From Saccharolobus islandicus REY15A (lineage in GTDB: Archaea > Thermoproteota > Thermoprotei_A > Sulfolobales > Sulfolobaceae), in assembly GCF_000189555.1 (NCBI RefSeq), contig NC_017276.1: a stretch of DNA of 64,000 nt. One strand, written 5' to 3'. Under the pieces are notes generated by a model. The model saw only the letters and a program-made list of their open reading frames with translations, was not told where the DNA came from and searched no databases. Positions 430-57,600 of this stretch are shown piece by piece (within the stretch, counting starts at the first letter, position 1; every line of letters begins with the position of its first letter). A program made the position numbers and the translations under genes.

Positions 430-1545
430 ATGAGCGAAAAAGAGCTTTTTATAGAATCACTGAGGGAATTCCTCAAAAGAGATGTTGAAAAAATAGCAAC
501 TAAAATAGACAAAGAAGATTACTACCCTAGAGATTTAGTTAGGAAACTCGGAGAGTTAGGCTTTCTAATCCCTTTAACTAATGGACTTTCACACTACGAT
601 ATGATGACAATTTTAGAAGAAATTGCCAAGGTTAGCGGGTCCTTAGCGTTAATTGCTGACGCTCAAGGAGAATTGGCTGGCGAAATGATTAGATTATATG
701 CAGACGAAAGACAAAGGAAGGAGTTTCTAGAACCGATGAGTAAGGGAGAGATGATAGGTAGTTTTGCCCTAACTGAACCTTCTGGTGGAAGTGATATAGG
801 CTCCATGAAGACTTTCGCTGAGAAAAGAAATGGATTATGGAGAATAAAAGGACATAAGATGTGGATAACTCAAGGACTTTACGCTGATATTTTCGTCACA
901 GTTACGAGAACTGGCTCATCTAGGCATGATTTATCCGTTTTCATAGTGCCTAGGGGTAATTGCGTTGAGACTAGAAAAATAGAAGTCATGGGTAATAGGG
1001 GAACTGGAACTGCTGAGGTAATCTTTCATGATTGTGAAGTGTCAAAAGATTACGTAGTTGGAGAAGTAAATAATGGGTGGAATATGGTAAATTCAGTACT
1101 AGAGATAGGGAGACTTGCTATATCTGGGATTGCAATAGGTTTGGCTGAGGCTGCGTTGGAAGAAGCTCTTAAGTGGGCTAGATCTAGAACAGCATTTGGC
1201 AATTCAATTTATGATTTTCAAGGGATAAGATGGTACTTCGCCGATTCCGTAGCTAAACTCAACGCGGTAAAATCAATGGCTAAGGATGTTAGCAATAAGT
1301 TTGATGAGAATTCAAAGGATAAGGGAGTTTACGTAGCAATGTTAAAGCTATTATCGGCGATTATCGCTAACGAAATAGTCGATATCTCCTTGCAAGTATT
1401 TGGTGGTATGGGTTACGCTAAGGGAACCACTATTGAACGAATATATCGTGATGCCAGATTACTTAGGATAGGTGAGGGAACTGATGAAGTACAAAGACAC
1501 ATTATTGCTAAATATATTGAACGGTATGGAATACCGTATATTTAG
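430..1545 (+). CDS. Acyl-CoA dehydrogenase
   Basis: FALTEPSGGSD, KMWITQG, QVFGGMGY and RIGEGTDEVQR motifs. Confidence 0.95.
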   Translation: MSEKELFIESLREFLKRDVEKIATKIDKEDYYPRDLVRKLGELGFLIPLTNGLSHYDMMTILEEIAKVSGSLALIADAQGELAGEMIRLYADERQRKEFLEPMSKGEMIGSFALTEPSGGSDIGSMKTFAEKRNGLWRIKGHKMWITQGLYADIFVTVTRTGSSRHDLSVFIVPRGNCVETRKIEVMGNRGTGTAEVIFHDCEVSKDYVVGEVNNGWNMVNSVLEIGRLAISGIAIGLAEAALEEALKWARSRTAFGNSIYDFQGIRWYFADSVAKLNAVKSMAKDVSNKFDENSKDKGVYVAMLKLLSAIIANEIVDISLQVFGGMGYAKGTTIERIYRDARLLRIGEGTDEVQRHIIAKYIERYGIPYI

Positions 1546-1608
1546 TTACTTTCGATCCTTTCATAGGTAAGGCTAAAAAGCTTTAATAAGTACGTCAAGA
1601 GAATATAT

Positions 1609-2750
1609 TTGGGGACTTTTTTGAATCGAATTGCCATAATAGGCATAGGTTGGTTCGGCTTTAGGTCTACAACTCCAGAAGTCTCATTTAGAGAGATGGT
1701 TTTCGAGGCTGCGTCTAGGGCATATAAGGATGCGGGAAATATAAATCCTAGAAATAATGTGGACTCTTTTATATCCTGCCAAGAGGACTTCTGGGAGGGA
1801 ATATCGATAGCTGACGAATTCGCGCCAGACCAAATGGGAGGAGCAATGAGGCCAACCATGACTGTAGCTGGAGACGCGCTTCAAGGATTAGCTCACGCTG
1901 TAATGCATATTAATTCCGGTGTAGCTAACGTAGTGTCAATTGAAGCCCATTCTAAGGTAAGCGACATACTAACGTTTAGTGACTTAGTGAAATTCGCAAT
2001 GGATCCCATATACGTTAGATCCATTAATCCACCAAATTTCCATTTTATTGCAGGGTTAGATGCGGTAAAGTTCATGCAAAGAAAAGGGATAACAAGGGAA
2101 GACTTAGCATTAGTAGTGGAAAAGAATAAGAAAGCTGGTCTATCATCTCCTAGAGCGTCTTATGCTAGTAATATATCAGCTGAAGACGTGTTAAAGAAAG
2201 ATTACGTAGTTTACCCTCTTAGTGAGTTGGATATGGCGCCTTTTGTTGATGGAGCAATAGTTATAGTAGTTGCTGATGAGGAAGTTGGTAAAAAGCTGAA
2301 AAAAGATGATTATCTAGTAATCAAGGGACTGGGATTCGTAACTGATTCCTCAAACCTAGAAACTGCAGAGCTAGGAAAGGCAAACTACATGAGGATAGCC
2401 TCAGATATGGCATATAGAATGGCTGGAATTGAGTCGCCTAGAAGGTATTTTGATGCTGTTTTTGTTGATGATAGATACAGTTACAAAGAATTACAGCACT
2501 TGGAGGGATTGAGAGTTTCTGAGGAACCATCAAAGGACTTAAGGGAGGGAAATCTCTCTCCTCAAGGAGAAATTCCGGTAAATCCCTTAGGTGGGCATAT
2601 AGCTAAGGGAGTTCCTTTAGAAGCTTCAGGTTTTTCATTACTGTTAGACGCAATAGATTATATTAAGCAAGGGAAAGGTGAAAGGGCACTTGTCGCGTCT
2701 TGGCGTGGAATTCCCACTCTTACTGGATCAGTTGTGGTGGTGGAAAAGCC

Positions 2751-2754
<4 letters not shown>
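1609..2754 (+). CDS. Thiolase-fold (SCP-x/archaeal acetyl-CoA acetyltransferase-like) protein, subunit 1
   Basis: IAIIGIGW, PF.DGA, NPLGGHIAKG; canonical catalytic Cys and His not evident. Confidence 0.8.
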
Positions 2755-3929
<1,175 letters not shown>

Positions 3930-4873: not shown

Positions 4874-5049
4874 TTTTTTCGAAAACATTTTAACCCTTAT
4901 ATATGTATTCTGTATTCATATCCAACTCAACATTGCAAGGAATCATTCCGTATAACGTACTACCGGATAAAAATATGCAGACATCTTCAACTCTACGCAT
5001 AAGTTTAACTGCGATATTTGAGTTTTCTCGTGAACTACCCTGCCCTTAC

Positions 5050-6256
5050 CGGTAGACCCAAAATCATATTAGAAAAAATATTTCTGGTAGGATAATATCG
5101 AATTTATAAAAGATAAAGAAATTTATAAGAGTATAAAGAATTCAATTGAAGAAAGGGTTTAAGGTGAGGGAGATGGCGTATTACCACGTGACATAGGAAG
5201 ATGGTAACACCAGGTCTCCCTCACCAAAATAACATTCAACAAATAGGATATAAATTACTTTCCATGTTGAACTTCCAAGGGGAAAAGGTAGAGGAGGTAG
5301 CGAAAACTCTCATCTCCGCGTGTTTGTGGAACGATTCAGTAGAGAACAAGTCCAGAGCGTATGACGTATCCCCACAGACCGTGAGGAATTACGTAGAGAA
5401 ACAAGGGATGGAAGTGACTGAAAAGCTATTGGAAAGAGCTAGGAAAATATCCTTGGAGATATTAAAGGGAGTGAATGAGATAGATCTCTCAATAGACTGG
5501 ACAACCAAGACATGGTACGGGAAACCAGTGAAAGGGCTCGGGAGCTCTGAAAAAGGAAACTCGTGGAACTACGCAACTGCAACAACCAAGTATAAGGGGA
5601 AAGTGCTTTTACTTGCCGCAAGTGAACGGTATGACTAAGGACGAGATAGTGAAGGCTCTTGTTGAACAAGTAATGGGATTCAAGATAAGGTTGATAACTC
5701 TTGACGCTGGTTTCTATACTGTTGACGTGCTCAACTTCATTTCACAGTTTAAGTACATAATTGCTGTTCCGGTTGGGGACGTGAAGGTGTACGAGGAGTT
5801 TGACGGGGATTACACAACTAATAGTAAGAGGCATAGGAGGGATGAGCAGGTCAAATTCAGGCTTCTCGTGTACAGCAAGGAAAAAGTGGGGAGAAAGAAG
5901 AAGAGTCTTGTTTACTTCGCTAGGGCTACTAACCTAGACCTATCCAAGAGGGAAGTGTTGGATTTGTACAATAAGGTAAGAGGTCCCATAGAGACCTCTT
6001 ATAGGAACATTAAGGCTTTTCTTCCATTTACTAGTTCTACTAAGTTTGTTTTCCGCACGTTGATCTTCGTGCTGGCCCTTGTACTCTACTCCTTATATAC
6101 CATATTCAAGGGGGAGGTGGGGAGAGAGGAGTTTAGATTATTATTAATTCTTTTATTTCCTGATTTATTCAATCCAGAGACTTTTACATTTAATATAATT
6201 GAAACGCTTATTTATACTATAGATTTATTTTTAAGGAGGTGATTTTGGGTCTACCG
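5050..6256 (+). mobile_element. ISH3-family IS (ISC1200-like), 1207 bp
   Basis: Perfect 17-bp terminal IR CGGTAGACCCAAAATCA (5050-5066 / 6240-6256); TTAC target duplication (5046-5049, 6257-6260). Confidence 0.9.
5201..6242 (+). pseudogene. ISH3 transposase, frameshifted near 5615
   Basis: Split into ORFs 5201-5638 and 5613-6242; SIDWT, TLDAGF and PIETSYR DDE-type motifs. Confidence 0.85.
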
Positions 6257-6621
6257 TTACGGACAGGGCATCTCCACCTCACGATGGGGATTTCCTGCTT
6301 CTCAGAGCAACCTCGATCCCCCTTCACCCACAGCGGAGGTTCCATCGAACGGAACCGTTCTGTAATGCCCCGTGTGGAAGAGGGGTTACGGAGGGTTGCT
6401 CTCCACAGGCGTAAGTTCCCCCAGTCCCAAGGGTACGGCCCAGCTCTTACAGCCGAGGCCTAAGAATTATCTATTTTTTGCAATAAAAAGGTTTCTATAA
6501 GGGGGCTATTCATCCCCTACCTTACGGAAGGGGACTTTCGCCCCCTTAACCCCTAATTAAGTTAAATTCAATTTCCTTAGCACTGGCGAAGCTTATCATA
6601 ACATTTACAACTTTTCCGTCC

Positions 6622-7617
6622 TTATCCCTTATCTTGCTTATAGAAAACTTCTCCAAGAAGTCTCTTATTTTTTACTTTATTCTCCTCGTCTAACAACAAT
6701 TTCAACGCAGTATAAAGTCTAAAACTCTCGGAGAATTTCCTCTCATTTTCGCTTAGTTCACTAATTTTTAACTCGTATATATTATTGCCAAGAATTAAAT
6801 TAAAAGCTTCATTCCTTATTATTAAAAATGCTTCGTCACTATCTCCTTGTATAGAAACCAAGTAATTAATTAGAGCCTTTTTCATATCACTGATTTTTTC
6901 AAGAGTCCTCCCCAATTCTACTTCCTTAGTCTTACCCTTATTAAGCTCCAATAAATAATGTTCAAATTCTTCCAATTACTTCCATGCCAAATCGACGTTA
7001 TTTTCCATTACTATTCTGCTAAGTTTATCCATGAAAAGATAATATAACTCTGGAGTGATAGATGTTGATTCTAACCATAAATATACGTTGCTTAGACCTT
7101 CTTTTATCTTCTTAGTTTTATCATTACCAAATTTTCTCCTTCTCAATTTCTCCCCGCCCTGGAAGGGCGATGGTTCCCCTCAAGAGGGATCATCGTTCCC
7201 ACCATCGATTCGGGATTACATCTCTCATCTGGTGGGCAGACGAGTGGATCAGAGATCCACTCCCGTCTGAATAGAAGGGGACTTTCATCCATAACGTCTA
7301 GTCCCTTAAGAGATGCTAGATGATCCTCCCACAGTCACATTAAGCCCTCAATTGAGCTGGGGAGGAGCGTCATTAACATCACTAAAAGAATTTCAGAAAA
7401 AAGGATTATTTAAATATAAGGGGGCTATCCATCCCCGCTAGCGAGGCTTTCCGCCCCCTTAACCCCCAATTTTTGTAATTCCTATGGATAGATCTACTGC
7501 AATATCATTTGATACTTTTACAAGCTTTTCCAAGTTATTTGCATCGATCTCAATATTCAACAATTCGCTCACTATTATTAATTTAGGAAGGCTATTCAAG
7601 AATTTCGGGTCATTCAC
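6622..7617 (-). pseudogene. Hypothetical protein gene split by the 7142-7474 insertion, with an in-frame TAA at 6976-6978
   Basis: Removing 7142-7474 restores one frame (...VDLSIGIT|RRKFGNDK...LAWK*LEEFEH...); the track ORF 6622-6975 is the C-terminal part. Confidence 0.6.
7142..7474 (-). mobile_element. Non-autonomous tnpB-derived element (~333 bp), second family
   Basis: Right part matches the tnpB 3' end at 39160-39264; left end GGGGGTTAAGGGGGCGG resembles the left ends at 6561 and 22029; excision restores the host reading frame (boundary ambiguous by 1-2 A). Confidence 0.75.
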
Positions 7618-20285: not shown

Positions 20286-20500
20286 ATCTTCATTATTACT
20301 AGCTTGTGAACTACCCCGCCCTTACGGACGTGGCATCTCCACCTCACGATGGAGATTTCCTGCTTCTTCCAGGAAACCTACTATACACACCCTCAGAGAA
20401 GGGTATGTATAGCAGAGGTCCCCTGTCCACAGGCTCTAAGGGCTGTCCCGACCCCGCACGAAGAATATTTAGAGAAGCATTATAGTCACGATCTACAGCC
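20286..20500 (-). ncRNA. Predicted omegaRNA (tnpB 3' end + right end + ~20-nt flanking guide AAGCTAGTAATAATGAAGAT); 5' boundary approximate
   Basis: Established TnpB architecture; stems CTATAC..ACCCT/AGGGT..GTATAG and the right-end hairpin are visible. Confidence 0.55.
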
Positions 20501-21549
20501 CAACCACACTTGGGGCATACAAACACACGGTCAGCCAAAGCCAGGTCCTTCTTAACGTAACCGCACCTAGCACACGTCTTAGAAGTATTCCTCGGATCTA
20601 CTTTCACTACCCTCCTACCAGCTCTTTCAGCCTTGTAGGAGAGATAGCTCACAAACTTAGAAAAGTTGGAGTGAAGGATATGCTTTCTCAAAACTTTACT
20701 TTCACTGCCCTCAACCATCTCCTTGACATCAAGATCTTCCACGTATATCTCACCATACTGTTCTACTAACCACGAAGTTACCTTATGAATATAATCACTC
20801 ATCAAGTTCTTCACATGCTCGTGAAGCTTAGCTAGTTTTTTCCTAACCTTCTCGTAGTTTCTAGATCCCTTCTTCTTTCTAGATAATGATTTTTGTAAGA
20901 TCTTTATCCTCCTCTCGACCTTATCAAAGACCTTAGGGTTCTCTACCACTACACCGTCAGAAGTAGTTACTAGTTTATCCACTCCTAAGTCTATTCCAAC
21001 TACTTTCCCAGTTTTCTCAAGAGGCTTCTTTTCAACCTCGACTTGAAAGATAGCATACCATCCAGTTACACTCTTCTTTATTATTACCCCTTTTACCTCG
21101 CCTTCTAACGGTCTGTGAAAGAGTACTTTTATCTCTCCTATCTTTGAGAGGATCAGCTTGTCTCCCTCAACCTTGAAACCAGATTGATTATAATTGATGA
21201 TCTTCAAGATCTTCTTGTACCTCAGTTTCCCCACTTTCTTCCCTTTCTTCTTCAGTTCGTGAAGAGAGTTGATGTTGTACCATAATTGGTTGTTAACCAT
21301 TTGAAGGGCTTTAGAGTAAACTAGTTCCTTCCCTTCTATTTTCAGATCTTTCAGCATGTTTTGAGTATCCTTAGGTGTTATCTTTTTCCCTTCTTTCCTC
21401 GCGTTATTCACCACGTCTAGCAAGGCATTGTATACTTTAGCCTCAATTTGCATCACTTTGATGAGTTTCTCCTCCACTTCTCTCGTTGGGTAAATCTTGT
21501 ACTTGAATGAGAGTTGGGTCTTGTCATTCTTCTCCTTGGCTCTCCACAT
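20344..21549 (-). CDS. tnpB: RNA-guided endonuclease TnpB (401 aa)
   Basis: RuvC D (GIDLG), E (VEDL), D (DRDYNA); Zn finger CARC...CPKC. Confidence 0.95.
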   Translation of the reverse strand: MWRAKEKNDKTQLSFKYKIYPTREVEEKLIKVMQIEAKVYNALLDVVNNARKEGKKITPKDTQNMLKDLKIEGKELVYSKALQMVNNQLWYNINSLHELKKKGKKVGKLRYKKILKIINYNQSGFKVEGDKLILSKIGEIKVLFHRPLEGEVKGVIIKKSVTGWYAIFQVEVEKKPLEKTGKVVGIDLGVDKLVTTSDGVVVENPKVFDKVERRIKILQKSLSRKKKGSRNYEKVRKKLAKLHEHVKNLMSDYIHKVTSWLVEQYGEIYVEDLDVKEMVEGSESKVLRKHILHSNFSKFVSYLSYKAERAGRRVVKVDPRNTSKTCARCGYVKKDLALADRVFVCPKCGWAVDRDYNASLNILRAGSGQPLEPVDRGPLLYIPFSEGVYSRFPGRSRKSPS

Positions 21550-21931
21550 ATTTTTTCAGTACCTCCAGTGTTACTTGTCCGCTCGTAGCTAGGAAATAAG
21601 AAGGAGACCAGAAGTGTCCTTTCCATAATTTTTCCTTTACTTGTGGAAATTTTCTCTGTATTTCTCTAGACGTGATGGTCTTGATTGCGTTCACGTACCT
21701 GGGTATATTTAGGGTTGGTTTTGCCTTGAATAACATGTGGAAGTGGTCTTTGTCTACTCCTATATCTATGACTTCAACTTCGAATGTTTTGCTTATTTCC
21801 TGAATTTGTTCCTTTAGGAAGTTGATTATTTCTTCATTATCGAACACCTTTCTGCGGTACTTCACCACCTGGACATAGTGGTAATAAAGAGCGTAAACTG
21901 AATGGGATCCTCTGTCCAATCTGTACCGCAT
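21524..21931 (-). CDS. tnpA: Y1 HUH transposase TnpA
   Basis: DHFH HUH motif, W..SYF and catalytic KKYVESQ. Confidence 0.95.
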   Translation of the reverse strand: MRYRLDRGSHSVYALYYHYVQVVKYRRKVFDNEEIINFLKEQIQEISKTFEVEVIDIGVDKDHFHMLFKAKPTLNIPRYVNAIKTITSREIQRKFPQVKEKLWKGHFWSPSYFLATSGQVTLEVLKKYVESQGEE

Positions 21932-22150
21932 AGTTATATCTATTTTTTAATAACTATAAAAAGGTTTCTATAAGGGGGCTATTCATCCCTCACGGAAGGG
22001 GACTTTCGCCCCCTTAACCCCTAATTAAGTTAAAAATATCTTCTTGATTCAGAGAAACTTTATCTAATTCACATAATATCCTAATTGAACAAGTGCTAGC
22101 AATTGAATTCAAAAAAAATCTGATAGCACCCAAGGTTCTATTCAGCTAAC

Positions 22151-22221
22151 CTGACTCCTCTTCACCTTGGAAGGGCGATGGTTCCCTTCCAACGGGTTCA
22201 TCGTTCCCACCATTGATTCGG
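22151..22221 (-). mobile_element. Solitary right-end remnant of the 7142/39264 tnpB family
   Basis: GAATCAATGGTGGGAACGATGAACCC...GGAACCATCGCCCTTCCAAGG...GGAGTCAG on the minus strand, similar to 39195-39264. Confidence 0.7.
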
Positions 22222-35026: not shown

Positions 35027-35342
35027 GGGCTATCCATCCCTTAAGGAAGGAGGACTTTCACCCGTTTGTCTCTACACTTTCATTCATTTCACTCATTTCA
35101 TGATCATTCATGATCGAGTGTAGGGACTTAGCCCTCAACCACCTACCAAACTTAACGGTAGGTGGGTCATGGGACTCCTTCGAGCCCAACGGCACGGGAC
35201 TCACATCTCTGCAATCCCTCTCACCCTTTTGGGCATAGCCCACATCGGCGTGAGAGTTTATTTCTAATCAAGAAAAGTTTATTATAAATAAATATAAAAA
35301 GATTTCTATTAACGCGAAAAAGGATTCACCCCCTTAACCTAT
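35027..35342 (-). mobile_element. Non-autonomous tnpB-derived element (~316 bp), third family; ends approximate
   Basis: Carries a tnpB C-terminal tail (SPVPLGSKESHDPP...WLRAKSLHSIMN), a terminal hairpin and a degenerate left end (CACCCCCTTAACC, AAAAAGATTTCTAT). Confidence 0.55.
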
Positions 35343-35397
35343 ATGGAAAGGTTTATTTACTGAACGTCCCACTAAAGTTAAATTGCTATACGGAATG

Positions 35398-38069: not shown

Positions 38070-38528
38070 TTGAGTGAAGAAAAAATGAGTGAAGAAAATC
38101 CATTTGATAAGATTATGCATATTCCTCTTGATAAAGTAAGAGAAATACTTAATAGAACAAACCTGGAGAGGCAAGTATTTAATGAAATTGTCGGAGATAA
38201 CTGGAAGGTAAAAATCATAGAAACAAAAGTGAATAAAAATAATTATGAAACTATATATAGATTATATGGTATTTATCTCGGAGATAAATCCGTAGCAGTA
38301 AGTGTTACAAGTGACGGAAAACTTAGACATATAATATTAAATGACGTAAAAGTAGTTAGTGAAACAGACCAGACTGTAAAGAAGAAAAATACCATGCTAT
38401 TACTGGACTATGAAAATCAGAGGGCGGTATTTACTGAAGGTGAAATGGAACTATGGAAAGGTAAAACTGGTTTTGACGCAATTAAGTCAATTAATATCCT
38501 AAAGAACGAATCAAGGGACTTGCAATGA
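38070..38528 (+). CDS. Hypothetical protein
   Basis: 152-aa ORF overlapping the next gene. Confidence 0.6.
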   Translation: MSEEKMSEENPFDKIMHIPLDKVREILNRTNLERQVFNEIVGDNWKVKIIETKVNKNNYETIYRLYGIYLGDKSVAVSVTSDGKLRHIILNDVKVVSETDQTVKKKNTMLLLDYENQRAVFTEGEMELWKGKTGFDAIKSINILKNESRDLQ

Positions 38529-38921
38529 ATATAAGTAGTCAGAATAAAATTTATACAATGAAGAGAAATTTAATACTTGAATATTGCAAGACTCCTAAAT
38601 CCTTCACGGAACTAAGGGATCTAACTGGAATGTCTGATGCGGGTCTATCTAAGGCACTAAACGACCTTATAAAGAAAGGGTACTTGCAGAAGACTTCGGA
38701 TGGAAAATATGTGATAACCGATAAGGTAATGCAAAGCTATAAGGAGAGAATTGTTAATAGGATTTGGTTTAAATATCAAGGAATCTCAGATGAGAAAATT
38801 GAAAAAATAGCTGATCTTTTGAAGGACGAGGGAGAATTTTATATTCTAGCTTCTAAAGGCAAGGATAAGACAGACGACTTAACGCTTCTGCTACAATATC
38901 TATTTCTACTTACATACGAAA

Positions 38922-38932
<11 letters not shown>
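38525..38932 (+). CDS. Winged-helix transcriptional regulator
   Basis: [32 protein letters not shown]. Confidence 0.75.
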
Positions 38933-40775
<1,843 letters not shown>

Positions 40776-43208: not shown

Positions 43209-46200
43209 CTTTCAATTCTATAGTAGATTAGCCAGCTGTTTCAGATCATAAGTAATTTGTGCTATTATATAGTCCTTTCAATTCTATAGTAGATTAGCTT
43301 AGAATGAAAATTGTCTCATTGCCTCTTCTTTAACTTTGTCCTTTCAATTCTATAGTAGATTAGCAGGGTTCGATTTGACTTATGCCCCTAGTGACTCGAT
43401 GGCACTTTCAATTCTATAGTAGATTAGCACGCGGTGAACTTTCTGTCTTTCAGGAATTCGGAAATCTCTCTTTCAATTCTATAGTAGATTAGCGAGAGAT
43501 GTACAAAATCAGAAGGACAGACCCTGGAAGAACTTTCAATTCTATAGTAGATTAGCGCGTAGTTGAGGAGTTTTTTCCTAATTTTTGCCATAAGAACTTT
43601 CTTTCAATTCTATAGTAGATTAGCCGGCAATGAGTTTTGGGTAAATGTGGTGGAAATTGATACTTTCAATTCTATAGTAGATTAGCCTGGGACACTGAAA
43701 GAGAGTTAGTGAGTCTGCACTTTACTTTCAATTCTATAGTAGATTAGCAAGGAGTCACTGATTGGATTATTCGTATTTAGTAAAAAGAACTTTCAATTCT
43801 ATAGTAGATTAGCTAGGGGCTTCAAACGAACTACCGACTGAAGAAGAATTACCTTTCAATTCTATAGTAGATTAGCATAAACTTTATATACCACCAAACA
43901 AACAATATATTGTAGATCTTTCAATTCTATAGTAGATTAGCCGGATATACAAAGCAGAACTAGGAAAGATCTAATTCATTATAGTCTTTCAATTCTATAG
44001 TAGATTAGCCACGCCCGATATGTCTATACCTGTAACTTCTTTGGAAAAACTGCTTTCAATTCTATAGTAGATTAGCTTACTTAACTAAAGTTCTGAGCCA
44101 AGTCTTAAACCTAGACTTTCAATTCTATAGTAGATTAGCTGAATTTCTTACAAACATATAAATTGTAATTGATGAATTTGCTTTCAATTCTATAGTAGAT
44201 TAGCTAGTAAAAACGTACTATTTTTTTGATTCGCAAGATGATACTCTCTTTCAATTCTATAGTAGATTAGCATGGCATACTACGACGTCAGTAGGGAACT
44301 AGAGATTTACATCTTTCAATTCTATAGTAGATTAGCCTAACATGGTAGCTTTCATGGCAGGCGACGTCACTAGTGTCTTTCAATTCTATAGTAGATTAGC
44401 TAGTAAAAACGTACTATTTTTTTGATTCGCAAGATGATACTCTCTTTCAATTCTATAGTAGATTAGCATGGCATACTACGACGTCAGTAGGGAACTAGAG
44501 ATTTACATCTTTCAATTCTATAGTAGATTAGCCTAACATGGTAGCTTTCATGGCAGGCGACGTCACTAGTGTCTTTCAATTCTATAGTAGATTAGCAAAA
44601 ATTCGCTACTACAAATCTTAGTTAAGTCCTGTTGCTTTCAATTCTATAGTAGATTAGCCATCACTCGTAGCTATATACCTTGGGACAAGGACTCTGGCTT
44701 TCAATTCTATAGTAGATTAGCAATTGCCTAAACTTTTCGCCGCTTATCTCTTCTTAAATACTTTCAATTCTATAGTAGATTAGCCAAATTTCTGGCCGGG
44801 GGGCCAGAATATCGGTAATCGATCTTTCAATTCTATAGTAGATTAGCGATATTGTTAATAGAGTTGTAATTGAAGTAATTGGAAAGGACTTTCAATTCTA
44901 TAGTAGATTAGCTAGGCGTCGCAAAGTTCTTCCGTGACATTGCAGACTGGACTTTCAATTCTATAGTAGATTAGCTGAATGGTGCGATAAATATCCTACA
45001 TATCCCCGAGTCTCTCTTTCAATTCTATAGTAGATTAGCATGATAATAGAGAGAATAAAGAGAGAAACTGGGGAGTTAAACTTTCAATTCTATAGTAGAT
45101 TAGCCGTGTCAATATCGATTGGGAAGACTTCAAGAAGGATCAAGCTTTCAATTCTATAGTAGATTAGCAATAATCGCTCGCCTTCTTAGCCTCTGCAATT
45201 ATCTGCGACTTTCAATTCTATAGTAGATTAGCTTTATTAGCCCGCGAGGGCTTTACAATTAAAGAAATAGCGTTCTTTCAATTCTATAGTAGATTAGCCC
45301 ATAGAACTAAACGGAAAAATTGTCACTGTTGAGGGTGACTTTCAATTCTATAGTAGATTAGCAGAAAGGGTAGGGAGACTAATAAAAATGCTTCCCAGTA
45401 TCTTTCAATTCTATAGTAGATTAGCCGAGGTCTCTCCTCATCTATACTTTTGATAATTGATATTAGTCTTTCAATTCTATAGTAGATTAGCGGTATTAAC
45501 GGTTGACGATAAACAATTAGAAGACAGAATACTTTCAATTCTATAGTAGATTAGCACTATTGATTAGATTTTTTGAGTCTGCCCAGAAAGATGAAACTTT
45601 CAATTCTATAGTAGATTAGCAGAAAGATCTGAAAGGACCTGAACGAAATTGGGCAGAATTGCTTTCAATTCTATAGTAGATTAGCCATTTTTGCTATTTA
45701 GCCATCCCAGACCGCGAAGGACTTCCTTTCAATTCTATAGTAGATTAGCTAGATGAGATTGTTGACCGTTGGCGGTGGGGAATATACTACTTTCAATTCT
45801 ATAGTAGATTAGCTAAGTTTAGGGAAAGGTTTAAAAACGCCTAAAAAAGAGAGTCTTTCAATTCTATAGTAGATTAGCGATATGAATGGAGAATTACTCC
45901 ATAATTTGATCCTAAAATCACTTTCAATTCTATAGTAGATTAGCCATTCATGGGGAATTCCTCCATCTTCATCTTCACCACCACCTTTCAATTCTATAGT
46001 AGATTAGCGGGTAATAATGGGCATAGGCATAGGGGTTGCTATCGGCTTCTTTCAATTCTATAGTAGATTAGCGATAAGCGATAAGCCCCGCGACTGCGAA
46101 GATGACAAAGAAGACTTTCAATTCTATAGTAGATTAGCTGGTAGTACAACTGTTACAAATCCTATTGGCAGCTTTAACTTTCAATTCTATAGTAGATTAG

Positions 46201-54641: not shown

Positions 54642-57600
54642 GCTAATCTACTATAGAATTGAAAGACACTGGGCGATAACGGGAACGACAGGGGCGGGAA
54701 AGACGCTAATCTACTATAGAATTGAAAGTTTATTTTTTCAAACTAATTCGCAAAAATTGAAAGTCGAAGCTAATCTACTATAGAATTGAAAGTATAATTA
54801 TCTTTAGTCTTCCATCCATGGTATTTCAGAAAAGCTAATCTACTATAGAATTGAAAGTATAAATATGGTGTCAGTGACGAATTAAAAATAACATAACCAG
54901 TGCTAATCTACTATAGAATTGAAAGTTACTTCTTAGTGTTTTTACGAAAGTGAAAGCATTATCGCGCTAATCTACTATAGAATTGAAAGTCAATATATCT
55001 TCCAATGCTGTTTTTGATATAGTCGACAACCGCTAATCTACTATAGAATTGAAAGGAAATAGAAAAAAGCTTTAAGAATTAAATATCTCTTCTGCCGGCT
55101 AATCTACTATAGAATTGAAAGAAAGAAGATCAAGATTTAAGATATGTAATGACCTTTGGACGCTAATCTACTATAGAATTGAAAGCAACTTTAACACCAA
55201 TTTTTTGGTTAATGGCACATAAAAGCTAATCTACTATAGAATTGAAAGTCATCTAAAACGTAGATATTGTATAATGGGGGCATTCTATGCTAATCTACTA
55301 TAGAATTGAAAGATATTGCTTTAATCCTCGACCTACTGTCCTTAGTTATGCTAATCTACTATAGAATTGAAAGCACTAATTATTGAACTAAGATGGGTTT
55401 TGTAAACTGTCCGCTAATCTACTATAGAATTGAAAGAAAAAATAGATATTACTTTATGCTTTGTCTCCTAGAGCGAAGCTAATCTACTATAGAATTGAAA
55501 GTATAATAAATATTATGTATATGGTTTGATTTACTTGTTAGCTAATCTACTATAGAATTGAAAGATGTTGATTATAGTTAACTGTCCATTTTGATAAATT
55601 TCTATTCGCTAATCTACTATAGAATTGAAAGTTAATTTTATCATCACCCTATTTTCTCTTGCTAATAACTTGCTAATCTACTATAGAATTGAAAGAATGT
55701 ATACACTTGATAAATTGGAATTATAACTTTCAATCCAGCTAATCTACTATAGAATTGAAAGGTCTCAAATATGTAGCTATTGCTGAACGTTATGAAAAAG
55801 CTAATCTACTATAGAATTGAAAGTGACTGTTGATATAAGCCGTATCATTAATGCGTATAAGGTGCTAATCTACTATAGAATTGAAAGTTATTATATACGA
55901 TAATATCATAGCCAACGTCTTTCAACAGCTAATCTACTATAGAATTGAAAGCCACCTGGCGTGATATAGATATTCTTATATTCAAGCAGCTAATCTACTA
56001 TAGAATTGAAAGTTACTAAGAAATACTGAACCATACATATTATTTCTAGGCTAATCTACTATAGAATTGAAAGATTATAGAGATATGGACTCTCACAAAC
56101 AAAAGAACTGTAAACTGGGCTAATCTACTATAGAATTGAAAGATATTGATTGATTAAAATAGCGTTGTTTAGATAGTTGTTAATGCTAATCTACTATAGA
56201 ATTGAAAGGTTATCGTACTTAATTAATATGTTGAATGGTAACGTTATGTCTAGCTAATCTACTATAGAATTGAAAGTCATACACCTTGTGATTAATTTTG
56301 TTTGACTTTAACGCTGCTAATCTACTATAGAATTGAAAGAAGTTTATTACCATTTTTGCTGAAAACGAGGATGAGGCAAGCTAATCTACTATAGAATTGA
56401 AAGTTAACACTAGAATTTTAACGTCTTCGTCACCGATATGATATTCCTGCTAATCTACTATAGAATTGAAAGCTTGTTCTTGTACTAGTTGGTCTGGCAC
56501 CTCGACTATAACTTTGGCTAATCTACTATAGAATTGAAAGTCATCAGAGACCCCATCCTTAACTTTCTCATCGCCTTGGAAGGGCTAATCTACTATAGAA
56601 TTGAAAGTCTATTCTTCCAATACCTCTCTAATTCTCTAAATTCCTCCTGCTAATCTACTATAGAATTGAAAGAGTTCATAGAGCCCTATGGGAATCCCTA
56701 CTAATCCCGCGCTAATCTACTATAGAATTGAAAGTTTGTGCTATATATAATGTAAGCTTCTGATGAATTGAAAAATATCTGGCTAATCTACTATAGAATT
56801 GAAAGTTTTTCAGCGTCAGGCCAGACAGAAGCGATAGTTCTATTCCTGCTAATCTACTATAGAATTGAAAGTTCTCTATTCCAGCCATCTCAACAACTCC
56901 TCCTCTTTAACCGCTAATCTACTATAGAATTGAAAGGTTTCACTAGACCGTGACTGTCGTTTAGCTCCAGCGGACTCGGCTAATCTACTATAGAATTGAA
57001 AGAAAAATATTTATAGAGAGAGATGAGTGAAAGTATATGGCAATAGGGCTAATCTACTATAGAATTGAAAGTTTTTCAATATAAAACTACATTCCTGCCA
57101 TGAACCATCTGCTAATCTACTATAGAATTGAAAGGAGAAAGATACGTGTTATCTATTCGTAGAGCTTCTTATTCCTGCTAATCTACTATAGAATTGAAAG
57201 TCGTTTTTTAGGGAAGAGTTTGGCGAGTGTGCAGCTTATTAGCTAATCTACTATAGAATTGAAAGTCGCTATTATTGTCAAAGAAATAATATACTTTTAT
57301 CTCCTGGCTAATCTACTATAGAATTGAAAGTTTTTATCAACAATAACCTGAAATTCCTCGAATCTAAATGCTAATCTACTATAGAATTGAAAGCTCAATA
57401 TTTTCAACCGACTGGAATAATATAATAAATCTGAAAGCTAATCTACTATAGAATTGAAAGTCATTTCCTAAGATCCCTTACATTTTCCAAGTAAGAGAAG
57501 CTAATCTACTATAGAATTGAAAGTTAGGAGTCGTAGCACAGGGAGCTGTACAGTCACAGAAGCTAATCTACTATAGAATTGAAAGACTATATACTCATAA

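Follow-up and report, generated by a model that had tools for sequence, protein, structure and literature searches.

Protein-free mobile elements that supply a guide RNA to a nuclease encoded elsewhere are known from bacteria. Mobilised stand-alone omegaRNAs working in trans are described in PMC10691335, which summarises Altae-Tran 2021, and palindrome-associated transposable elements (PATEs) 'often encode omegaRNAs' for the TnpB of other elements (Meers 2023, PMC10055086); the homing role of TnpB has been shown for full-length elements in bacteria (PMC10055086). Here, we compare these systems with SMN1, a MITE (miniature inverted-repeat transposable element) of Saccharolobus islandicus, one copy of which occupies positions 5030–6561 of the 64,000-nt stretch of contig NC_017276.1 (strain REY15A) that was analysed, hereafter the window. 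From the comparison, we propose to view intact SMN1 copies as genes for stand-alone omegaRNAs, carried on a chassis that TnpA can mobilise and exploiting both the transposase and the homing nuclease of the parent element, a reading to which we assign a probability of roughly 0.6. The concept itself, with trans-acting stand-alone omegaRNAs and PATEs encoding omegaRNAs, is already published; what appears to be new, within the literature searched, is the placing of SMN1 and its sister Sulfolobales MITEs in the stand-alone omegaRNA class, together with their variations of the scaffold.

SMN1 was described by Berkner and Lipps in 2007 as a non-autonomous S. islandicus element whose ends are common with those of the insertion sequence (IS) ISC1733 (as cited in PMC3718332). 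It is approximately 320 bp long, has no inverted terminal repeats, and is found in Icelandic strains in 7 (REY15A) and 9 (LAL14/1) copies. According to the same source, it has been mobilised in S. islandicus REN1H1, and its transposition is said to depend on the ISC1733 transposase. Throughout the literature searched, which did not include the original SMN1 paper, SMN1 figures as a MITE moved by this transposase and no guide RNA is mentioned; a 2024 review of prokaryotic MITEs mentions neither TnpB nor guides, and the paper on the REY15A TnpB (PMC11043419) mentions neither SMN1 nor MITEs. MITE-like repeats containing the downstream end of orfB were described in Acidianus hospitalis in 2011, before omegaRNAs were known (PMC3119797). 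With a tnpB 3' end at one end, these share, by their description, the anatomy of SMN1 and of the other MITE families treated below.

The closest characterised nuclease is the IS605-type TnpB7 of S. islandicus REY15A, which has TTTAA as its transposon-associated motif (TAM) and uses a guide that begins immediately past a conserved UUCAC (PMC11043419). Its right-end RNA (reRNA) has a minimum length of 151 nt, consisting of 113 nt derived from the coding sequence (CDS) and a 38-nt right end, and TnpB7 also edits with an reRNA supplied from a separate plasmid, i.e. in trans (PMC11043419). The layout that an earlier note on this DNA had assumed for the guide RNA, the tnpB 3' end followed by the right end and a flanking guide, agrees with these properties of the TnpB family, including the acceptance of guide RNA in trans.

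Like the bacterial stand-alone omegaRNAs and PATEs, SMN1 is protein-free and mobilised, has transposon ends, and would carry an omegaRNA usable in trans, in those systems by a TnpB or IscB encoded elsewhere. It differs from them in its crenarchaeal host, in a scaffold whose stem 1 is flipped and whose stem 3b is enlarged, in the retained tnpA promoter as putative driver, and in that its function is predicted.

SMN1 copy and parent element in the window

The SMN1 element lies on the minus strand. The target and TAM, TTTAA, is found at 6562–6566 directly 5' of the left end, as it is in front of all intact copies, and the right end finishes ...GGGTAGTTCAC at 5030. Over 2600 nt, the window is identical to S. 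islandicus REY15A (CP002425.1). Two other S. islandicus genomes, LAL14/1 (L076) and CP046616.1 (L075), have the site in its precise unoccupied form, ...TGCGATATTTGAGTTTTCTC|TTAAATTCAAT..., and are shorter there by exactly 1532 bp, which fixes both boundaries of the element and bears out the extent given in the earlier note. Both empty alleles show that the insertion took place 3' of TTTAA without target duplication, the signature of the IS200/IS605 family. No terminal inverted repeats are present in the window element; subterminal imperfect hairpins occur at both ends, CCCCTTCC-GTAA-GGTAGGGG of the TnpA type at the left end (6514–6533) and CCCTGTCC-GTAA-GGGCAGGG at the right end. The third pair is a mismatch or wobble in each of them, and the right-end hairpin covaries.

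The coding capacity of the copy is restricted to short open reading frames (ORFs), the tnpB frame being closed by stops with the last 7 codons alone recognisable. Once a nested insertion (described below) is removed, the element is approximately 321 bp long and 96–97% identical to five intact 320-bp copies in LAL14/1, which are located at different TTTAA sites, each with a different right flank, and in which scaffold and guide are contiguous. The five copies are almost identical to each other, and no covariation was obtainable from that set. By its sequence, 5030–6561 is a copy of SMN1, a protein-free derivative of an ISC1733-type IS200/IS605 element; compared with SMN1 as published it is the same element, to which the window copy adds a nested ISH3-family IS.

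The putative partner is an intact ISC1733-like IS200/IS605 element at 20306–22029 on the minus strand, with tnpA at 21524–21931, tnpB at 20344–21549 and TTTAA at 22030–22034. The tnpA product is a Y1 transposase (Y1_Tnp), and the right end comprises the 38 nt after the tnpB stop codon. The 401-aa TnpB, 95% identical to S. islandicus TnpBs, aligns over residues 14–365 with the ISDra2 TnpB, and its translation contains the motifs GIDLG, VEDL and DRDYNAS, which we take to be the RuvC catalytic residues. The two elements lie approximately 14 kb apart, and the derivation of SMN1 from this nearby TnpB element, placed at 15 kb in the earlier note, is supported; the likenesses on which it had been based were confirmed with small corrections. 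The left end common to both (6467–6561, minus strand) is 88% identical to 21937–22029 over approximately 95 nt, and the subterminal hairpin contains an indel of 5 nt. Each of the two follows TTTAA, and the left end is conserved among 25 MITE left ends as well as 2 full-length elements. At the right end, for which near-identity over about 60 nt had been claimed, 4 of the 61 terminal nt differ once the nested IS is removed (alignment read by eye), and BLAST returned 92% identity over 49 nt and 84% over 68 nt.

In the left-end hairpin (21969–22029 compared with 6496–6561), the full-length form is 5 nt shorter (CCGT-----GAGGGATG) than that of SMN1 (CCGTAAGGTAGGGGATG), and the short form was also found in L004 and in the MITE copies L021 and L066. 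The ISC1733-like element was further observed in two actinomycete assemblies, Streptomyces gamaensis (L001, 2.1-kb contig) and Planomonospora alba (L003, 32-kb contig), at 95–97% nucleotide identity to the window; these copies look like contamination with Sulfolobus DNA and not like native elements. The same IS, at 90% nucleotide identity and with a different right-end hairpin (CCCCACUCUUAUGGACGGGG), is present at 1297–3032 of an 82-kb contig (L002) of a Thermoplasma metagenome-assembled genome from an acidic habitat, and its presence in a euryarchaeal assembly may be due either to inter-phylum transfer or to misbinning.

Conservation of the guide-RNA scaffold

When SMN1 was aligned with 11 full-length 3' ends, with TnpB identity down to 63%, and a twelfth at 56%, a counterpart was found for every module of the guide-RNA scaffold. 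SMN1 becomes homologous to tnpB from the first base of stem 1 onwards. In the parent this base is 151 nt away from the right end, a distance equal to the measured minimal length of the TnpB7 reRNA (113 nt of CDS and 38 nt of right end). SMN1, from the same strain and element family, aligns to the whole of that reRNA. The TnpB7 reRNA overlaps the tnpB CDS, whereas the SMN1 version is non-coding, has the other stem 1 polarity and another stem 3 length, and has a putative promoter of its own.

All modules are on the minus strand. The expected 5' end of a TATA-driven transcript is formed by a MITE-specific hairpin, GGCCUCGGCU-GUAAG-AGCUGGGCC (6437–6460), which has no counterpart in the full-length element and whose arms vary by subfamily (GGCC../..GGCC versus GACCUC../..GAGGUC) and are still complementary by eye. 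OmegaRNA stem 1 follows, CCC-UUGGGACU-GGG (6420–6433), with a loop matching the full-length scaffold and a flipped stem: full-length elements have GGGG-UYGGGACU(G)-CCCC and SMN1 has CCC-UYGGGACU-GGG, the loop being unchanged and the polarity reversed. The conserved GCCTGTGGA occupies 6402–6410, beside the nested stem at 6304–6402; read as RNA (GCCUGUGGA), it contributes the strand CCUGU to stem 2, the partner strand being GCAGG (within 6289–6301), a helix which is invariant in the Sulfolobales set and is changed in a compensatory manner in L070 (CCCGU/GCGGG). Stem 3, the enlarged central hairpin (6304–6402), has an outer stem homologous to the full-length one and a replaced distal part. The outer stem has gone from CAGGGGACC/GGUUUCCUG in full-length elements to AGAGCAACC/GGUUGCUCU in SMN1 by paired substitutions, with six of the eight outer pairs compensatory, and the distal part is 41 nt longer than that of the parent (a gap of 100 versus 59 nt). 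Further 3', GAAGCAGGAAAUC and hairpin 2 (AUCCCCA-UCGUGAGG-UGGAGAU) occupy 6270–6301 and span what in the parent are the last tnpB codons and the stop; hairpin 2 has one C.A mismatch in the S. islandicus copies and covaries among full-length elements. The right-end hairpin and UAGUUCAC complete the 3' modules of SMN1.

The earlier note had described a larger nested stem and the conserved GCCTGTGGA, both of which are present, and had concluded that structure is kept while sequence is not. This conclusion turned out to be stronger than claimed, as it holds, with compensatory changes, for the whole scaffold and not just for the terminal 60 nt. An origin of the enlarged hairpin as a divergent tnpB 3' end was considered and dropped, a tblastn search of 121 TnpB relatives against SMN1 having found no coding remnant in it beyond the last 7 codons.

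In the ISDra2 omegaRNA, cryogenic electron microscopy revealed that nt -5 to -3 pair with the segment lying between the stem-1 arms, forming a pseudoknot, and that stem 2 closes a long stem 3 (PMC10097598); the distal stem 3b is disordered and dispensable, and its deletion improves activity (PMC10097598). By analogy, and not from a solved structure, this layout can be mapped on SMN1, with stem 1, the pseudoknot, stem 2 closing stem 3, and a distal 3b, and the part that has been replaced and enlarged in SMN1 would then occupy the position of ISDra2 stem 3b. The ISDra2 omegaRNA has no detectable sequence similarity to the SMN1 scaffold, and the extra hairpin 2 belongs to the Sulfolobales lineage only, being absent in L070, L066 and L057.

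Covariation among full-length elements and MITEs

The structure was assessed with a covariance model (R1), which was built solely from the 11 full-length tnpB 3' ends and then run on the MITEs. In the 11 full-length sequences, the six-helix structure has 97.5% of the cells paired and 10 pairs with compensatory changes; the observed covariation score was reached by 0 of 500 shuffles, and slid controls gave 45–57%. Much of this covariation lies inside the tnpB reading frame, which indicates an RNA constraint on top of coding. R1 matched every one of the approximately 45 SMN1-type copies over model positions 1–158, with scores of 77–106 bits except for one degenerate copy (L026) with 49 bits, and an independent full-length scaffold (L070, TnpB 56% identical) reached 91.9 bits, about the level of SMN1. 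In a joint alignment of 51 distinct sequences, 94% of the cells pair, 27 of the 48 pairs have changed on both sides, and all four covariation measures are above every one of 500 shuffles (slid controls 46–54%).

Around the same loop, stem 1 is C-G in the MITEs and G-C in the full-length elements; its three core pairs are C-G in 31–32 sequences and G-C in 14–17, and none is unpaired. The stem-1 region is also the most conserved MITE module that was not forced by the search, with 0.069 differences per site against 0.13–0.20 for the hairpins, and indels among MITE copies cluster in the distal central hairpin. A candidate pseudoknot, in which GGACU of the stem-1 loop pairs with the invariant tail AGUUC (-7 to -3), has 94% of its cells paired and is nearly invariant; in two copies of another MITE family (L057 and L043) an A-U pair has become G-C on both sides (GAGC with GCUC).

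Two long-range helices returned by RNAalifold were not adopted. In the MITE set, GAGCUG with UAGUUC is almost invariant, and what changes it has are one-sided; in the full-length set, GCGGGGU with GCCNCGU is at odds with stem 1 as supported by the MITE comparison. The top MITE scaffold score, 106.5 bits, belongs to an SMN1-type copy at approximately 560–700 of L059, which has a partly inverted left end (GGGGGCTATCCATCCCCCACCTTACGGAGGGGGACTTTCGCCCCC) and a duplicated TATA segment.

These data bear on the possibility that SMN1 is a plain MITE with no RNA role, an internal-deletion derivative which is mobile through TnpA DNA signals and in which the leftover tnpB 3' sequence plays no part and transcripts, if any, do not matter. 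The mobilisation in REN1H1 and the dependence on the ISC1733 transposase, as reported in PMC3718332, are what such an element would display. Both subterminal hairpins are kept and covarying, as TnpA recognition would need, and the near identity of the S. islandicus copies fits a recent burst better than long selection. However, the TnpA of IS608 needs just the subterminal hairpins and adjoining short sequences, whereas the compensatory conservation in SMN1 extends into DNA without coding function, 100–190 nt away from the right end. In addition, the loop of stem 1 belongs to the most conserved unforced module, and the deletion was made exactly where the functional reRNA has its 5' limit. We regard the plain MITE as unlikely, though as an explanation that retains some weight.

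Retention of the tnpA promoter position

The TATA sequence CCTTTTTATTG at 6481–6490 has the same position as the tnpA TATA of the parent, CCTTTTTATAG. It is kept in 25 SMN1-type left ends, in line with the earlier claim that the position of the tnpA TATA is retained. Across the 25 MITE left ends and the full-length elements, conservation of the left end begins at the TTTAA boundary and continues via the TnpA-type hairpin and the TATA (CCTTTTTATA/T) as far as the site of the tnpA start codon. The TATA of the parent ends 23 nt ahead of the tnpA ATG, a distance that is typical of leaderless genes in Sulfolobus. The same spacing in the MITE would place the start of transcription just ahead of the family-specific hairpin at 6437–6460; the predicted start of SMN1 follows from this spacing.

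Scaffolds in other MITE families

A second, unrelated MITE (MITE2) of approximately 328 bp is present on the minus strand at 7147–7474, after TTAC, and has a strong TATA (TTTAAATA). Its left end is 90% and its last 126 nt are 89% identical to a tnpB-only ISC1316-like element (L005 4402–5689), and it likely keeps the guide-RNA scaffold of that parent. In metagenome loci, R1 identified a 385-nt MITE type (L057 10216–10600, and L043 at approximately 2700–3087), the scaffold of which resembles the full-length L066 8211–8337, and a further type in L047 (approximately 6570–6936, ending at 6936). In the MITEs of L057, L043 and L047, the left end is of the IS200/IS605 type, and the 3' domain, which is short and omegaRNA-like, has no hairpin 2. 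Across the sequences compared, at least four MITE families of different parentage keep the scaffold of the parent, and retention is the rule in these elements. This is hard to explain by the needs of TnpA alone, and is a further point against SMN1 being a plain MITE.

Several other repeats were observed in the window. A tnpB-only ISC1316-like element lies at 38070–39264 on the plus strand; its 3' end (38951–39264) is 90% identical to L005 5382–5694, and its coding region is apparently broken, with ORFs of 152 and 135 aa. A 57-nt fragment at 22165–22221, approximately 135 nt outside the left end of the ISC1733-like parent, is 88% identical to the MITE2-family scaffold and may be a remnant of an older insertion. 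On the minus strand at 35027–35345, left-end-like segments (GGTTAAGGGGGTGAATCC... and ...GGGTGAAAGTCCTCCTTCCTTAAGGGATGGATAGCCC) surround approximately 300 nt, and this may be another degenerate repeat derived from IS200/IS605. CRISPR-like arrays with the repeat CTTTCAATTCTATAGTAGATTAGC occur in both orientations at 44181–44596, 45855–46008, 55031–55185 and 55413–55565; in the first of these, a 196-nt unit is repeated 2.1 times at 100% identity and represents duplicated repeat-spacer units. A scan of viral contigs with the right-end word and the MITE-specific word gave no matches, and the 20-nt right-end word retrieved three loci among genome contigs, none of them a Sulfolobales genome, and was unusable for counting copies.

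Disruption of the window copy by a nested IS

As noticed earlier, the SMN1 copy in the window is disrupted by a nested IS. This is a 1207-bp element of the ISH3 family (5050–6256, plus strand) with 17-bp perfect terminal inverted repeats (CGGTAGACCCAAAATCA), and it is surrounded by a TTAC duplication at 5046–5049 and 6257–6260. Its transposase is split into overlapping ORFs (5201–5638 and 5613–6242) with domain matches to DUF4322 and DDE_Tnp_1, and the two halves align to positions 2–120 and 122–298 of the ISH3-family profile.

The nested IS entered the right-end TnpA hairpin close to its loop, leaving 20 nt of SMN1 on the far side. The 5' half of the hairpin, GCCCUGUCCGUAA, is found at 6257–6269 (minus strand), where 6257–6260 is one of the TTAC copies, and the right end's terminal 20 nt, GUAAGGGCAGGGUAGUUCAC (5030–5049, minus strand), which comprise the hairpin's 3' half together with the UUCAC end, are 1207 bp away from the remaining scaffold. 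Scaffold and guide are consequently not contiguous in this copy, in contrast to its intact relatives, and the covariance-model score is 61.7 bits, compared with 92–97 bits for intact S. islandicus copies. With the TnpA hairpin split and the scaffold separated from the last 20 nt and the guide, the window copy would be inert for both transposition and guiding, and should be dead, neither moving nor guiding.

Proposed function of intact copies

For intact copies, we propose a cycle in which TnpA from a full-length element would move SMN1 as single-stranded DNA to TTTAA sites, as the literature reports for SMN1. The retained promoter would then drive transcription through the scaffold into the flank, and TnpB from full-length elements would bind the SMN1 RNA in trans. 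As the guide would be the right flank, its sole TTTAA-preceded match would be the element's own empty site, arising from excision or present on an unoccupied homologous chromosome. If this empty site were cut and then repaired with an occupied copy as template, the MITE would be restored or spread.

The flank that would serve as guide for the window copy, GAGAAAACTCAAATATCGCA on the element strand (5010–5029, minus), is found directly after TTTAA in strains without the element. This observation bears on the proposal in the earlier note of a dispersed guide repertoire beside the CRISPR system, in which SMN1 guides would benefit the host by arming TnpB against foreign DNA. CRISPR arrays are present in the same window, and stand-alone omegaRNAs 'provide for targeting additional sites' according to PMC10691335. 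However, SMN1 guides are not acquired but are the host chromosome 3' of the insertion site, the one guide that was checked matches the host's own empty allele, and no mechanism that would choose invader sequence is apparent. This part of the earlier note was not upheld, and we consider a defensive repertoire very improbable; guides that match only the empty site of the element carrying them suggest selfish retention or homing instead of defence.

Another possibility is that SMN1 RNA binds TnpB and mainly titrates or modulates it, as a competitor or decoy, rather than securing retention of the MITE. The evidence from the scaffold applies equally to this explanation and to guide function, and nothing at the sequence level separates the two. 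The number of SMN1 copies in REY15A (7) is near that of its IS605-type tnpB genes (8, PMC11043419), and the mismatches and the enlarged stem 3 could yield a poorer guide RNA. Against a pure decoy, the UUCAC end and the TTTAA target, which it would not need, are strictly kept in intact copies, although both are needed by TnpA. On balance, a decoy role appears improbable.

Some points weigh against the proposed role of intact SMN1 copies as omegaRNA genes. Transcription of SMN1, loading of TnpB and cleavage with SMN1 RNA are all steps that we infer from sequence. Editing by TnpB7 with reRNA supplied in trans from dual plasmids reached just 10–20% (PMC11043419), and binding of SMN1 RNA to TnpB could be weakened both by a stem 3 that is 41 nt longer than that of the parent and by the C.A mismatch in hairpin 2 of the S. 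islandicus copies. The joint alignment was fitted to the covariance model, which favours structure. The metagenome copies were collected from hot-spring metagenomes by the pattern GCCTGTGGA-N(85-115)-GAAGCAGGAAATC, which makes GCCTGTGGA and GAAGCAGGAAATC invariant by construction and misses decayed copies, and the LAL14/1 copies were located via an exact match to a 59-aa spurious ORF inside the scaffold, i.e. via a single protein cluster. For the pseudoknot, statistical support is weak, as 21 of 500 shuffles reach the score, and only one pair is compensatory, in two copies. Single-sequence minimum-free-energy folds of SMN1 returned stems 2 and 3 and the terminal hairpins and not stem 1, for which alternatives between G-runs and C-runs exist. 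Finally, an Rfam scan of the whole window returned no family at the gathering threshold.

Implications

The stand-alone omegaRNA reading of intact SMN1 copies connects an archaeal MITE that has been known for long with RNA-guided homing by the parent transposon, in a strain where TnpB has been characterised both genetically and biochemically, which makes the prediction testable with existing strains, plasmids and public RNA sequencing data. For annotation, MITEs bearing a scaffold would represent extra TnpB guide loci that gene-based surveys have overlooked. If the reading is true, SMN1 scaffolds are also natural experiments on the variable parts of the omegaRNA, such as stem 1 polarity and stem 3b length, which would be useful for the design of thermostable TnpB guides.

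More broadly, and tentatively, with a confidence somewhat short of even, we suggest that the IS200/IS605 MITEs of the Sulfolobales have repeatedly been reduced to a left end with promoter, a complete omegaRNA and a right end, and that their long-term survival depends on TnpB homing in addition to TnpA. Since the SMN1 guide matches the unoccupied allele of sister strains, in a species that exchanges chromosomal DNA, SMN1 could possibly act as a small gene drive that competes with its parents for TnpB. If true, MITEs of the IS200/IS605 family would depend on two parental functions, not one.

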